From Macrostomum lignano (Eukaryota): a stretch of 64,000 bases of DNA. A model generated the notes under the pieces. It was not told where the DNA came from, made no database searches, and saw nothing but the letters and a program-made list of their open reading frames with translations. Location of the stretch: positions 1,116 to 65,115 of the forward strand of contig NIVC01002573.1 in assembly GCA_002269645.1 (NCBI GenBank), read 5' to 3'. The position numbers and the translations under genes were made by a program. Numbering within the stretch: the stretch's first letter is position 1; each line of letters begins with the position of its first letter. Positions 55,039-62,272 of this stretch are shown one piece after another.

Positions 55039-56645
55039 TCATCCAGAAGCGGTCTGCTGGATCCAGCTGGTGTACATCTGCACTCGAGTGTACACTCCCG
55101 GTCGCTGGGGCTTGGCGCAGCCCTCGCCCCAGCTCGTGATGCCCTGCAGGTACCAGACTCCGCCGGACTTGCACACCAGCGGCCCGCCGGAGTCGCCCTG
55201 GCACGCGTCCTTGCCGCCCTGCTCGTAGCCGGCGCACACCATGTAGCTGGTGATGGCGCCTCCGTAATGCGACGCGTCGCCGCAGATCGAGTTGGGTACG
55301 ATCGGCACCATCACCTGCAGCAGCCTGGTGTTGTCCCCAGTGCCCTGCGTGCTGCCCCAGCCTGTGGCGAAACAGCTGGCCATGTTCGACACCGGCGAGC
55401 TCGGCAGGCACACCGGAGACACCTGCGAGTTGAACTGGAACGGCCGGTCCACCCGCATCATGGCCAGGTCCTGGTTAGTCCGGCTCGAGTCGTAGTTCGG
55501 ATATCGAACTACCTGCGTCACCTTGCGTCTCTGCAGCGTCGCCTCAGTGCAGTCCCGGCAGTGTCGTCCCGCGTCAACGCCCCACATCGACGGCGACATG
55601 TAGTTCTCGACGCAGTGCGCGGCCGTGATGATCCAGTTAGCGTTGTAGATGCTGCCGCCGCAGAAGTGGCCGCCGAAGAGACGCAGCGACACCATCCAGG
55701 GCCAGCTGTTCTTGACAGCCTCCTTGCCGCCCACGATGCGAGTTTCGTCTGGCGGGATGGCGGGCCTGCCACAGCCTGACGGTGCTGGAAAGAAATTTTT
55801 AACAAAATTTTAATCTAATAATTAAAGAATAGAAGCTCTAAATAAACTTTTTGATGCGTTTCATTCTTACATGGCGGCTTCGTTGTGGTGATGGGCGACA
55901 CTGTGGTTGTAGTCACCGGTGGCCTGGCAGTTGTTGTCGTCTGGCCTCCACAAACCTCATCACTGCCATCTGAGCAGTCTCTGAAGCCATCGCACCACCA
56001 CTGGTTGAAGATGCATTTGGAGTTGTCCTTGCAGGGTCGCTGGTTTATCGGGCAGTCCAGCGTAATCGAGCAATACTTCTCATCGGAGCCGTCTGGACAG
56101 TCTTTGATGCCGTCGCACTTCCACTTTGAAGGGTAGCAGAATCCTCCAAATCGGCAGGAAATATAGCCACTTGGGCAGGGCACTCTGGTGCGGTACTCGT
56201 CGTTTGACACGAATCGGTAGCGCAGCTGGAAGCCAGACTTCTGCAGGTAGGAATCGCTTTTGAATACCAGCAGTATCGACGAGGACTGCGACAGAACCGA
56301 CCAGGAGCCGCCGCCGCAGAAGCGACCAAGGACGGAGCTGGAGTCATTCCAGCCGTCGTACACAATCAGAGAGTCGCTCGAACACTCCGATGTGTACTCG
56401 AGGTCGAAAGAGACTGAAATCACCTCGATGTGGTAGCTCGGGCCGTCGGCGCGGATGAAGTAGCGGCAAGTCGAGTCCGCGTCGTATGGAGTGCGGCCGA
56501 ACAGGCGGTGGGAGGCGATGACTCCCTGGTTCGTCTGGTACAGAATATCGACGCCACAGTTCTTTTCGCTGGCAGTAGCCACTTCTTGGGCAGCGGCTGC
56601 AGACAGCAGGGCTGGACACAGTGCCAGCACGAATACCAAACTCAT
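55039..56645 (-). CDS. Secreted CUB-LDLa-LDLa-(Thr/Pro linker)-trypsin-like serine protease, copy A, intact
   Basis: Exons 56645-55871 and 55784-55039 (phase 1). Activation site R-IVGG; triad TAAHC / QDLAM / GDSGGP; S1 Asp (KDACQG). Confidence 0.93.
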
Positions 56646-56987
56646 TGTGCTTAACTTGTGTTTGGAAATTCAAAATACTTATTAAGAATTCACCCGTGCA
56701 GAACCGCATTTAAATATTCTTAGCGGAGAGGGTAATTATCAGCTAATTGCTTGCAGGTCAGGTAAAATTTTCTCTCACAATTAAAAACTGCAGGTGCTAA
56801 TTTTCCGCAGTGATGCAATAATGGTGAGAAGGTTTTCCTCAGTAAGCATTTCCTTAACCTCCAAATGTTCCCGGCCGAAACACACAGCTCCACTCCATTG
56901 TCGAGATCAATGCGATTCCGAAATTTACGTCTTCCGGCTTCGACTTCCAAAGTCAGTGCCGGGATGATTGCTGCTGGGAAGGATTTG

Positions 56988-58890: not shown

Positions 58891-60599
58891 TGGAAAGAGA
58901 AATACAATGAGGTCGCGTAGATTAAATTCTCAGAACAACTTAGAGGCTCTGTCCTGAATCGACCTGGATTGCTTTCAACAGCAGAAACACAGAAAACGGC
59001 CTCACGGCAGTGCCGGCAGATTTTGCTGAGGCTGCAATAATCCGGATGAGAAGCAAGCGATGCAGAAAATCAAGGTACGAGCTCAGCTTCATTATCCGTC
59101 ACTCGTGCAGAGCAATCGGTTATCAGTGATGGAAAATCTGCAAAAAGAATGCTTTGCAGAACTCACTGAGTCTGAAATATTTGTCTTGATAGCTGGAATC
59201 CTTTCGGAGTGTTTTATGGCCCTGCCCTCTGTTTCCTCGGATCATATACAAAGGCTTTGGTGTATTTCTTGTTTAAACTGTGCAGTTGCTGCGTGCTAAT
59301 AATAATGGAAAATTAAAATCAATCCTAAACAGATGTTTCTAAAAATGGTTACTATCTACCTCGGGTCAAAGGGTCACGCCAGGGCTACCATCTGCAAAAG
59401 AGTTCTCATATGACACTTGCATATCCATGCCATGTGATTTTTTCTTACTCAAAATGGTGATCTGCGGCCTTATAAGTATAGAACTCCTTTGCAATAACGT
59501 TAATCTTTTTCACAGATTTTCCCCAAGATAGTATCATTCTTATTCATTTATCCGTTTTGTTTTTCTTGAAGTGACCCCTTTGGAATTTAGAATAGCGGCA
59601 GAATTACATTTCAAAACCTGCTTACCCATGCAAATGAGAGTTCTCAGGGAGTTGGGGATTAGCTATTCAGCTCAATGTCACGCCAAACCTAGCTGTTTGG
59701 GAGGTAGATTAGTAGCATTGATTTTCTTTCCAATTCCACTGCGTGATTTAATGTACGTGTTTATTATTCAATTTTCTATGTACGCTGATTTAGCCCAGGC
59801 CCATCTCACCCACCCCCCTCCACGCTGGCTGATTCTGACTGACTGCAATAAATATATCATCGAGAGGGCTTATTAGCCCTGTGTACGGTTTACGCTTTTC
59901 GTTTTGTTAGCGTCTCGCTTGAGCCTCAGCTCCAAAACAGTTTGGCGGACCATCGGTCTTTTCATTTCTACAGTACACTAGCCTCTCTATCCGAGAATCT
60001 TTCTCGCCCTGAATTAAAAATTTTCTGATGCAAATATTGCGCATAAATTAGCATAGACAGCTCTGAGGTTGGTAGGTACGATGGATAAAATTCAAATCCG
60101 ATTGTTGCTTCTCAAGTCAGTCATTGCAGCATAAATTGTTACTCAGGACAACAAGCCTGGCATGAGGAAGATCTCTTATAAGTTTCCTTTCCTTATTAGC
60201 CCGTAATTTTAAAACAGTTTTTTTTACTTTGGAAAAGTTTTCCCCAAAGACACTACGTATAAGCAAAGTTTTCCAATTTTCGGAACTCCAAGGTTCAGCG
60301 AGGGTTTACCCTCGTAACCCTGCTTGAGACGTGCAAATACTTTTGCACGTGCAACCAATACAGTAATTATAATATTGATTGAGTCACCGCTCAGTTGCAG
60401 TCGGTGACTGGATGGGCACGTTAAATAAATTTAATTGCAGGCAGCTTGTACACCTGTGAGCAATTTATTAATTGTACATCAATTAAACTGTGCAGTATAA
60501 GTATGCGACAATCGGCTGCTTGCAAACTAAGGCTACAATTTCAAGTTGTCAAGCCTTCTTACCTTGCTATAGGTACTAATAGGTACTATCAAAGTAGCC

Positions 60600-62272
60600 A
60601 TGCGACTGCCTAAACTGTTGCCATTGCTTCTAATTGGAGGACTGGCGACATTGAATGTCGCAATTGCCGACGAACTTAACTGCGGCGTCAACCTGCTGTA
60701 CGAGACGGACCAGACCGTGATAGCGTCGCACCGGCTCTACGGCCGGAAGTCCTACCAGCCGAATTCTGTCTGCCGGTACATCATCCGCGCCTGGAGCCCC
60801 GACTACCGCATCGAGATCACATCGGTGAGTTTTGACCTCGAGTACACTTCCGAGTGTACGGGCGATTCCCTGACTGTCTATTCGGGCGGAAACGATTCGA
60901 GTCCTGTGCTGGGCCGATTCTGCGGATCCCTAGACTGGTCGGTGCTCACGCAGAGCTCGTTTGTGGCTCTTGTGTTCTCTAGCGATGCCTACCTGGAGAA
61001 AGGCGGCTTCCAGCTGCGGTACCGGTTCGTGTCCAAAGACGAGTACCAGAAGCGAATCGCTTGTCCAAATGGCTACTTGGCCTGCAACAGTGGCAACGGC
61101 TGCTACCCATCCAAGTGGAAGTGCGACGGAATCAAAGACTGCAAGGACGGATCGGACGAACAATTCTGCACGAGCACGCTTACCTGTCCAAGTGGCCAGG
61201 TTGCCTGCAAGGATAACTCCAAATGCATTTTTTCTGGCTGGTGGTGCGATGGCTTTCGCGACTGTGGTGATGGCAGCGATGAGACAAGCTGCAGCGGCGG
61301 TGGCAATACCGGTGGCAATACTGGTGGAGGCACTGGAGGCAGCACCGGTGGAAGTACGGGGGAAGCACTGGAGGCGGCACAGGTGGCGGGACACGTAAGT
61401 TAACGTCTTTTAAGGTCTTTTCAACTCACTCAACGCAATCATGAATTTTCCGGTACTCGGATAGCAGCTTTCTTGCACTTGAATTACGCCAGACCAGTAA
61501 CTCAATGCAATTTACTTTGCTCTTGCAGCACCTTCGGGCTGTGGCACGCCAGCCATCCCGCCAGACGAAACTCGCATCGTGGGCGGCAAGGAGGCTGTCA
61601 AGAACAGCTGGCCCTGGATGGTGTCGCTGCGTCTCTTCGGCGGCCACTTCTGCGGCGGCAGCATCTACAACGCTAACTGGATCATCACGGCCGCGCACTG
61701 CGTCGAGAACTACATGTCGCCGTCGATGTGGGGCGTTGACGCGGGACGACACTGCCGGGACTGCACTGAGGCGACGCTGCAGAGACGCAAGGTGACGCAG
61801 GTAGTTCGATATCCGAACTACGACTCGAGCCGGACTAACCAGGACCTGGCCATGATGCGGGTGGACGGCCGTTCCAGTTCAACTCGCAGGTGTCTCCGGT
61901 GTGCCTGCCGAGCTCGCCGGTGTCGAACATGGCCAGCTGTTTCGCCACAGGCTGGGGCAGCACGCAGGGCACTGGGGACAACACCAGGCTGCTGCAGGTG
62001 ATGGTGCCGATCGTACCCAACTCGATCTGCGGCGACGCGTCGCATTACGGAGGCGCCATCACCAGCTACATGGTGTGCGCCGGCTACGAGCAGGGCGGCA
62101 AGGACGCGTGCCAGGGCGACTCCGGCGGGCCGCTCGTGTGCAAGTCCGGCGGAGTCTGGTACCTGCAGGGCATCACGAGCTGGGGCGAGGGCTGCGCCAA
62201 GCCCAGCGACCGGGAGTGTATACTCGAGTGCAGATGTACACCAGCTGGATCCAGCAGACCGCTTCTGGATGA
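60600..62272 (+). CDS. Secreted CUB-LDLa-LDLa-(Gly/Thr linker)-trypsin-like serine protease, copy B; three single-base frameshifts
   Basis: Exons 60600-61394 and 61529-62272. Missing G at ~61360 (restoring it gives the phase-1 junction) and missing C at ~61866 and ~62203 relative to copy A. Confidence 0.88.

Follow-up and report, generated by a model that had tools for sequence, protein, structure and literature searches.

Near-identity confined to the protease-coding exon of two Macrostomum lignano paralogs assembled in inverted orientation, most likely the product of ectopic gene conversion

Conversion acting together with selection is the basis of RHD/RHCE-type models of mosaic paralogs. 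In Drosophila, Amy-p and its linked inverted paralog Amy-d, like Hsp70, have coding sequences that are homogenised, silent sites included, next to flanks that evolve independently, and identity ends where the coding block does (PMC3924832). The GOT1 paralogs of Tigriopus californicus are converted over one part and diverged over another; the usual reading of such mosaics is that divergence, selected or not, blocks the conversion of the diverged part (PMC3728101). The locus described here, assembled as a linked inverted pair of protease genes of the flatworm Macrostomum lignano (hereafter A and B), resembles Amy-p/Amy-d in its arrangement as assembled, in the homogenisation of coding sequence down to silent sites beside independent flanks and in the place where identity ends, and resembles GOT1 in being partly converted and partly diverged.

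The analysed window comprises 64,000 nucleotides of M. lignano contig NIVC01002573.1 (Mlig_3_7 assembly), and all positions refer to it. In the contig, genes A (minus strand, 55039..56645) and B (plus strand, 60600..62272) face each other head to head across about 4 kb, and both encode a putative signal peptide followed by a CUB domain, two LDLa domains, a linker and a trypsin domain. Each consists of two exons, with a single exon 1 where a first-pass annotation of the locus had spoken of CUB-LDLa exons in the plural. According to its translation, gene A is intact (506 aa, Thr/Pro-rich linker), with exon 1 at 56645..55871, a GT..AG intron at 55870..55785 and exon 2, TGA included, at 55784..55039. 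Its product matches the Pfam profiles Trypsin (6.9e-72, covering the full profile, 1-220), CUB (2.2e-17) and Ldl_recept_a (2e-16) and is 99% identical to UniRef100_A0A1I8GFW1 of M. lignano; the GenBank annotation is without any model for this gene. Gene B has the same architecture, with a Gly/Ser/Thr-rich linker, and is out of frame at three places as assembled. It comprises exon 1 (60600..61394, 795 nt, phase 0), a 134-nt intron (61395..61528) shared with GenBank model PAA56791.1, and exon 2 (61529..62272, TGA included), which needs phase 1. The intergenic spacer (56646..60599) holds both 5' regions, without similarity between A and B, and a (GACA)n array of 1.9 kb (56987-58889) that the contig must cross to join A to B. 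Nucleotide-level data cover one genome copy of the locus, the remaining M. lignano evidence being at the protein level; about three paralogous copies of most loci exist in this species (PMC10733133).

Both proteins carry the His57/Asp102/Ser195 motifs, Asp189 and an Arg-Ile-Val-Gly-Gly activation site, which places them, from their primary structure, in peptidase family S1, with a chymotrypsin fold and a predicted trypsin-like specificity. In an alignment with the plasmin catalytic domain, TAAHC, D(L/I)A and R|(I/V)VGG were matched, with the pro-region cysteine in CG(R/K)P. The catalytic domain was most similar to those of plasmin, TMPRSS2, plasma kallikrein, enteropeptidase and hepsin (E ~1e-55 to 1e-63), and over the full length a similarity of 35-39% was found to 'ovochymase-like' proteins of molluscs, nemerteans and brachiopods. 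Assignment to the type II transmembrane serine proteases (matriptase/TMPRSS) was rejected, the hydrophobic leader of about 20 residues being followed directly by the CUB domain, with no SEA or other N-terminal domain detected by Pfam.

The near-identical tract, delimited by alignment and with an inverted-repeat finder, spans 55039..55761 of the minus strand in A (723 nt) and 61552..62272 of the plus strand in B (721 nt as assembled). Encoded in it are the AIPPDETR end of the activation peptide (its final eight codons) and the complete catalytic domain, and it closes with the stop codon. The repeat finder resolved it into three abutting pairs of inverted arms with 99-100% complementarity (55039-55109/62202-62272, 55108-55446/61866-62204 and 55447-55790/61523-61866). 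Base-level alignment from A 55761 / B 61552 to the TGA (A 55039 / B 62272) gave 723 columns with two substitutions and two 1-nt deletions in B, the copies being 99.7% identical with an overall divergence of 0.3%. Both substitutions are synonymous, namely A 55177 G versus B 62135 C (CTG/CTC, Leu) and A 55090 C versus B 62221 T (TAC/TAT, Tyr). The first-pass annotation had described this 723-bp match with its two silent changes, its abrupt edges in the pro-region and at the TGA and its diverged surroundings, all of which the alignment reproduced; the two single-C gaps it listed are likewise present, but it had overlooked that they shift the frame of copy B. Outside the tract, A and B are 70% identical or unalignable, and in the CUB-LDLa coding region identity amounts to 69.8%, the longest uninterrupted match being 17 nt. 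At the 5' edge, exon 2 opens with 23 nt that precede GCCATCCCG and contain four differences, and the copies align gap-free across the boundary, the only gaps being the two homopolymer deficits inside the tract. At the 3' edge, the copies differ at the base right after the TGA, and no alignment is possible between their 3' flanks. These flanks resembled nothing else in the window and nothing in two further M. lignano loci, which speaks neither for nor against a transposon insertion at the stop codon. Both edges thus fall where alignable coding homology ends, 23 nt into exon 2 and at the stop codon.

A separate estimate of silent divergence for each exon, as suggested in the first-pass annotation, gave a dS between A and B of 1.41 for the CUB-LDLa exon versus 0.012 for the tract. 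This is in line with its view that purifying selection is insufficient to explain the identity. The same disparity is illustrated by the four-fold degenerate sites, which differ at 36/58 in exon 1 versus 1/125 in the tract. At the exon-1 rate, four or fewer differences in 723 columns have a binomial probability of 5e-105, and the longest identical run in the tract, 314 nt, was reached in 0/20,000 permutations of the differences (maximum 103).

An intronless contig from a related organism (L002) carries a B-type ortholog. For exon 1, dN was 0.075 between B and L002, 0.242 between A and B and 0.256 between A and L002, and nucleotide identity of B to L002 was 78.8% versus 67%, yielding the grouping ((B,L002),A). 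For the tract, dS was 0.012 between A and B versus 0.39 between either of them and L002, yielding ((A,B),L002). This test compares three sequences (A, B and L002), the A-type ortholog of the L002 organism being absent from the set; a search for it with degenerate CUB motifs and a 3'-terminal coding 27-mer found no match in the metagenome collection, which evidently lacks the sample of L002. This incongruence between exon 1 and tract is the pattern classically left by ectopic gene conversion. In the protease domain, the separate M. lignano UniProt entries for the A type (P0001) and the B type (P0360) differ by one residue, and the domain of the L002 gene is 93% identical. A third, highly similar donor was rejected, the next M. 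lignano paralog found being 44% identical. Besides, a CUB-LDLa profile search among proteins up to about 1.75 times the query length returned B itself as the sole M. lignano match, and a literature search found no mention of the identifier Mlig002999.

The outside sequence also bears on selection. Purifying selection and codon bias alone, without recombination, could be supposed to keep the protease domain identical, since this domain is more conserved between organisms (dN to L002 of 0.039, versus 0.075 for exon 1 of B and 0.256 for exon 1 of A) and has a high GC3. However, 33 of 115 four-fold sites of the tract differ from L002, versus the single one between A and B. Silent sites that are free to change are nevertheless identical within the genome, which refutes selection as the sole cause and leaves it practically no credence.

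We consider it quite probable that A and B are old head-to-head paralogs whose exon-2 coding part was ectopically converted, the deficits in B being consensus errors. Most likely, gene conversion, a well-known process, replaced this segment of one copy by that of the other. The two paralogs, an inverted pair, would be old, as suggested by the exon-1 dS of about 1.4, and non-allelic (ectopic) conversion would have copied the exon-2 coding part between them by homologous recombination in exact register. Exchange in homologous register is indicated by the indel-free alignment of the bases immediately preceding the tract. The copied region would comprise the end of the activation peptide and the entire S1 protease domain. 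The latest event would be very recent, the tract having a dS of 0.012 and an overall divergence of 0.3%, below the 1.1% reported for coding sequences of M. lignano subgenome copies. The tract would be limited by homology, stopping 23 nt short of the unalignable intron on the 5' side and at the stop codon on the 3' side, past which the UTRs of A and B share nothing, and exon 1 would now be too diverged for conversion. One point stands against this mechanism, which gives no account of it: a divergence gradient is absent at the 3' edge. As for the direction of transfer, L002 agrees with A at one of the two variable tract sites and with B at the other; because it has one state of each, these sites do not set the direction.

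Since the tract limits coincide with the end of recombination-grade homology, selection on modularity is unneeded. Of the first-pass interpretation, gene conversion is supported by the three-sequence incongruence; its adaptive part, a shared catalytic module kept while the recognition domains diverge, is not supported. Exon 1 of both genes is under plain purifying selection (dN/dS 0.17 for A-B and 0.06 for B-L002), and its A-B comparison gave no evidence of adaptive divergence of the N-terminal domains.

Conversion may have occurred once or repeatedly. GC3 is 0.87 in the tract of A/B versus 0.75 in exon 1 (p=0.0013) and 0.82 versus 0.64 in L002 (p=5e-5), while a control paralog gave 0.78 versus 0.73-0.77. 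Besides, the tract has diverged from L002 at silent sites 2.3-3x less than exon 1 has. Together with the position of the edges at the conserved-coding limits, these observations hint at recurrence. A single recent conversion, most simply of B type onto A with a coincidence of edges that is largely fortuitous or imposed by homology, has an appreciable though less than even chance. It would account for there being just two substitutions between the arms and, with one species pair, fits the A-B data equally well; 723 nt is an ordinary length for one event. A tract of B ancestry would also explain why its dN to L002 is near that of B exon 1 and unlike that of A. Against a single event stand the position of both edges within 0-23 nt of conserved coding limits and a tract GC3 raised in two organisms; besides, B ancestry predicts equal silent divergence to L002 in tract and exon 1, contrary to what was found. 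On balance, we favour recurrent conversion over a single event. A further proposal, made tentatively and rather doubted than believed, is that the protease exon has evolved in long-term concert in at least two Macrostomum lineages, its silent sites being shaped by GC-biased conversion and the CUB-LDLa exon evolving independently; the raised GC3 and the two- to threefold slower silent divergence of the tract would be its trace.

Copy B as assembled carries two 1-nt deficits in the tract, both intact in P0360 and L002. At 61865..61866 (plus strand), CC is reduced to C (GACCGG -> GACGG), shifting the frame after ...MMRVD, and at 62201..62204 CCCC is reduced to CCC, with a second frameshift in ...CAKPQRPG.... 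Exon 1 is moreover 1 nt out of register with exon 2; an extra G in the G5 run of the linker (61358..61362) restores the register, matching ...TPPSGCG of L002, and this run is a probable third consensus deficit. The splice junction 61394/61529 was derived from the length and range of PAA56791.1, while the P0360 model uses the GT at 61354 as splice site instead. PAA56791.1 (P0086) spans positions 60600-61795 and is truncated (353 aa, out-of-frame tail), whereas UniRef100_A0A1I8JDT6 (P0360) is an intact 499-aa version of B. All three deficits (3/3) are deletions in short homopolymers, and no stop codons or other lesions remain once the register is allowed for. They are most likely residual long-read consensus errors of Mlig_3_7 rather than real lesions, because the UniProt version of B is intact and an unrelated gene of the window, ABCA, likewise lacks 1 nt of a homopolymer within its contiguous Walker-A region. 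The misannotation of PAA56791.1 follows from these deficits. The assembly was made with Canu from PacBio reads and polished with Pilon from short reads (PMC5730564), in a genome where 93% of read pairs multi-map (PMC10733133).

Alternatively, B could be a real decaying pseudogene in this subgenome copy, with conversion or duplication near the time of inactivation. Three frame-breaking deficits inside 850 nt would fit such decay, and redundancy among about three copies per locus would tolerate the loss (PMC10733133). We regard this as unlikely, given the homopolymer nature of the deficits in an otherwise lesion-free gene, the same type of defect in the ABCA gene, the intact UniRef entry and the dN/dS of 0.06 between B exon 1 and L002, which indicates strong purifying selection; besides, the GenBank model of B comes from transcript-based annotation, therefore the locus is transcribed. 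The frameshifts bear on any claim of a shared functional module. If they are errors, both genes would encode trypsin-like, Arg/Lys-specific secreted proteases, predicted to be active, that are identical in the catalytic domain and differ in the CUB-LDLa region and the linker.

The identity itself might be an assembly artefact, either through collapse of the arms during correction and polishing or through a chimeric contig across the (GACA)n array. Redundancy is high and repeats are abundant in this genome, and collapse and chimeras are acknowledged for the assembly (PMC10733133). The adjacency of A and B and their opposite orientation rest on a join that crosses the 1.9-kb microsatellite array, the contig ends 1.7 kb from gene B, and consensus errors are demonstrably present (ABCA gene). 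In addition, both M. lignano assemblies were presumably built on the same PacBio reads, so that a few per cent of true tract divergence may have been smoothed by correction. However, correction is unable to turn about 30% divergence into 0.3% with edges at the exon margin and the stop codon, separate A-type and B-type UniProt proteins carry the same catalytic domain, and the L002 gene naturally has a 93%-identical protease domain. A chimeric join would make the paralogs dispersed, yet the conversion signal would remain. A fold-back read artefact was rejected, the arms not lying within a full palindrome and the spacer and two exon 1 sequences being asymmetric. An artefact is thus very improbable, even more so than a pseudogene.

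Under the preferred reading of ectopic conversion, the pair shows a known phenomenon in ordinary and clean form, and current understanding is unchallenged. Its main value concerns annotation and quality control, B being misannotated and A unannotated in GenBank; in paralog dating or expression work on A and B, exon 2 should be treated as non-independent and multi-mapping. The pair also illustrates, cleanly and with sharp bounds, ectopic conversion restricted to one exon, in a flatworm with several copies of most loci, and, if long concerted evolution is true, would be a compact natural model of such evolution, confined to an exon, in a neopolyploid genome with about three copies per locus.

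In protein architecture, A and B share CUB, LDLa and a C-terminal trypsin-fold domain with lophotrochozoan ovochymase-like proteins and the vertebrate matriptase/enteropeptidase/TMPRSS group. Unlike the matriptase group, they have an N-terminal hydrophobic signal-like sequence instead of a type II membrane anchor or SEA domain, and unlike ovochymases, which have several protease domains, they have a single one; they are likened to these named proteases by similarity, not orthology. Unlike Amy, only the coding part of the 3' exon is homogenised here, while the 5' exon, beyond an unalignable intron, has a dS of ~1.4; persistence across species is documented for Amy, whereas the present case is known from the M. 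lignano pair plus the B-type gene of L002. In contrast to mosaic paralogs explained by selection, the diverged part gave no evidence of positive selection (dN/dS 0.17 and 0.06), and the heterologous intron is a sufficient barrier to conversion in A and B.

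The window covers positions 1116-65115 of M. lignano contig NIVC01002573.1 in assembly GCA_002269645.1 (Mlig_3_7) and therefore reaches the end of the contig; it holds only two copies of this gene type, A and B, arranged head to head. Gene A (- strand) starts with an ATG at 56645, with exon 1 running down to 55871 and exon 2 spanning 55784-55039 after an 86-nt GT..AG intron, and encodes an intact product of 506 aa with Pfam matches to CUB, two LDLa repeats and a full trypsin domain. Gene B (+ strand) starts at 60600, with exon 1 (matching CUB and two LDLa repeats) up to 61394, a 134-nt intron and exon 2 at 61529-62272, the splice junction being set at 61394|61529 by the range of the GenBank product PAA56791.1. 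For the catalytic domain, the best alignments are with plasmin, TMPRSS2, plasma kallikrein, enteropeptidase and hepsin, and they show the His/Asp/Ser motifs and Asp189 in place, as well as the activation site (R|IVGG) and the cysteine of the pro-region. Both proteins are predicted to be secreted, zymogen-type proteases of trypsin specificity, and, by analogy with the family, the N-terminal part of each probably remains attached through a disulfide bond once the enzyme is activated. For the intact gene A (55039-56645), GenBank lists no product on this contig; it is represented only by the N-terminally partial UniProt entry A0A1I8GFW1. Relative to A of the window, this entry shows three residue differences and a one-residue insertion in the N-terminal part, and one residue difference in the protease domain, a possible sign of a different subgenome copy. 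After A and B, the closest M. lignano paralog found is Mlig029509g1 (CUB-LDLa-protease), with 44% identity in the protease domain; it occurs at two loci (L003 6001-12828 and L004 6001-11019) that encode an identical 432-aa protein, and has at least seven exons vs two in A and B.

The homogenised protease segment is real and was correctly described in the first-pass annotation, whose coordinates and counts proved exact. Across its 723 columns, from A 55761 and B 61552 to the TGA, there are two substitutions, both synonymous, and B lacks a single nucleotide at each of two places. Upstream, the 23 nt that open exon 2 contain four differences, and the introns cannot be aligned. The final 51 nt before the TGA are perfectly identical, with no margin such as the 5′ edge has; the first base past the stop codon already differs and nothing is alignable beyond. 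The CUB-LDLa coding region shows 69.8% identity, its longest stretch without a difference being 17 nt. When computed separately for the two exons (Nei-Gojobori), as had been proposed, dS was 0.012 (dN 0) in the tract vs 1.41 (dN 0.24) in the CUB-LDLa region. At the rate of exon 1, so few tract differences have a binomial probability of 5e-105, and the longest identical run reached 314 nt vs at most 103 nt when differences were shuffled.

A protease-domain search retrieved a 218-aa JGI protein, 93% identical, which represents only the last 218 residues of a complete 516-aa B-type CUB-LDLa-LDLa-protease ORF (59-1609) on L002, an intronless environmental contig of 1918 nt (sample 3300036433, Ga0393217_002747). 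L002 did not come from the M. lignano protein sets searched, and we infer that it is a transcript from a related flatworm. Its ORF has a Gly/Ser/Thr linker of the same kind as B, shares the C-terminus (...WIQQTASG*) and shows 78.8% identity to exon 1 of B. Exon-1 dN was 0.075 for B-L002, 0.242 for A-B and 0.256 for A-L002, and tract dS was 0.39, 0.012 and 0.39, respectively. From these comparisons, B and L002 are orthologs and the A/B duplication is far older than the B/L002 split. Hence, for these three sequences, exon 1 groups as ((B,L),A) vs ((A,B),L) for the tract, an incongruence that would be the classical product of conversion postdating lineage separation. Selection alone was ruled out as the cause of tract identity, as had been argued from A and B, because the tract differs at 33 of 115 four-fold positions between organisms, whereas A and B differ at 1 of 125. 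Gene conversion is thus supported, the outside ortholog strengthening the original case.

The “single-C gaps” noted earlier exist, but their weight was understated: as assembled, they break the protease frame of B at ~61866 and ~62202. Besides, the 795-nt exon 1 of B and its exon 2 are out of phase by one base, for which the G5 run at 61358-61362 is the simplest explanation. As a consequence, PAA56791.1 (P0086) has only 353 aa and an out-of-frame tail. The Mlig_3_7 annotation was built from transcripts (PMC5730564), so B is transcribed. The frameshifts are probably artefacts. They would otherwise make B a pseudogene, against which it can be argued that all three lesions are deletions within short homopolymers, that L002 is intact, and that a similar 1-nt G-run deficit affects another gene of the window, which encodes an ABCA transporter. 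Moreover, UniRef100_A0A1I8JDT6 (P0360), an M. lignano entry presumably based on the older ML2 assembly, gives B as a protein of 499 aa in which both sites are read through and the protease domain is identical to that of A. The ABCA-type coding blocks (ABC_tran, ABC2_membrane_3) lie at 37582-49111 (- strand); the frame of the second nucleotide-binding domain breaks at ~38190 in a short G run, inside a contiguous, locally intronless Walker-A region (“VRGVTFGR*”, continuing one frame over), probably through an assembly consensus error. As a further point against a pseudogene, the assembly was produced by Canu from PacBio reads and then polished by Pilon with Bowtie2-mapped short reads (PMC5730564), and 93% of read pairs multi-map in this genome (PMC10733133). 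Duplicated segments such as the tract would be where short-read polishing is weakest.

The DNA-level comparison rests on one copy of the A/B locus. At the protein level, the A-type (P0001) and B-type (P0360) UniProt entries confirm a common catalytic domain, with one residue different; both probably come from the same raw reads, and smoothing could have removed a few per cent of real tract divergence. A and B are linked across a 1.9-kb (GACA)n array (56987-58889, with interspersed AGTTAAGAGAG units) that makes up half of the spacer, and B lies 1.7 kb from the contig end. A mis-join could have occurred at this array, which may also be a fragile site. Were the linkage incorrect, A and B would be dispersed paralogs instead of inverted neighbours, leaving the conversion signal unaffected. 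Minisatellite arrays are exceptionally dense (2619-4048, 17378-20064, 29481-30670, 63520-63764 and about a dozen others; units 16-mer x89, 41-mer x63, 18-mer x65 and, near the contig end, 41-mer x6), consistent with the repeat-rich M. lignano genome. About 3.3 kb past the 3′ end of A, a 190-aa ORF (51178-51750, - strand) carries a C-type lectin domain (E 4.8e-6).

Taken alone, the A-B data fit one very recent conversion event, the tract divergence of 0.3% being below the 1.1% CDS divergence reported for paralogous subgenome copies (PMC10733133). Three hints favour a longer conversion history. Both tract edges lie at homology limits. GC3 is raised in the tract relative to exon 1, both for M. 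lignano (0.87 against 0.75, p=0.0013) and for L002 (0.82 against 0.64, p=5e-5), a control M. lignano CUB-LDLa-protease gene giving 0.78 vs 0.73-0.77. Finally, B-L002 silent divergence in the tract (L002 890-1609) is 2.3-3x below that of exon 1 (Fisher p=0.0035). Divergence between species is not slowed by conversion itself; the reduction would be accounted for by GC-biased conversion acting over a long time, and also by hidden paralogy, with L002 orthologous to an unsampled third paralog.

Both tract edges coincide with the limits of recombination-usable sequence, the 5′ edge lying 23 nt from the dissimilar intron and the 3′ edge at the stop codon. Indeed, the 3′ UTRs of B and L002 are unalignable though orthologous, so the older A/B UTRs must long since have lost homology. 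Exon 1, with 70% identity and runs of at most 17 nt, is out of reach of homologous recombination. Selective “protection” of the N-terminal domains is an unneeded assumption. Their dN/dS (0.17 for A-B, 0.06 for B-L002) indicates ordinary constraint, leaving unsupported the adaptive reading in which a shared catalytic module is kept while the recognition domains diverge. Mosaic paralogs carrying unconverted islands are already described (PMC3728101). In Drosophila Amy and Hsp70, such confinement of conversion to the coding parts of palindromic neighbours is textbook knowledge (PMC3924832). The pair is a new example of an already well-known process and is of modest interest.
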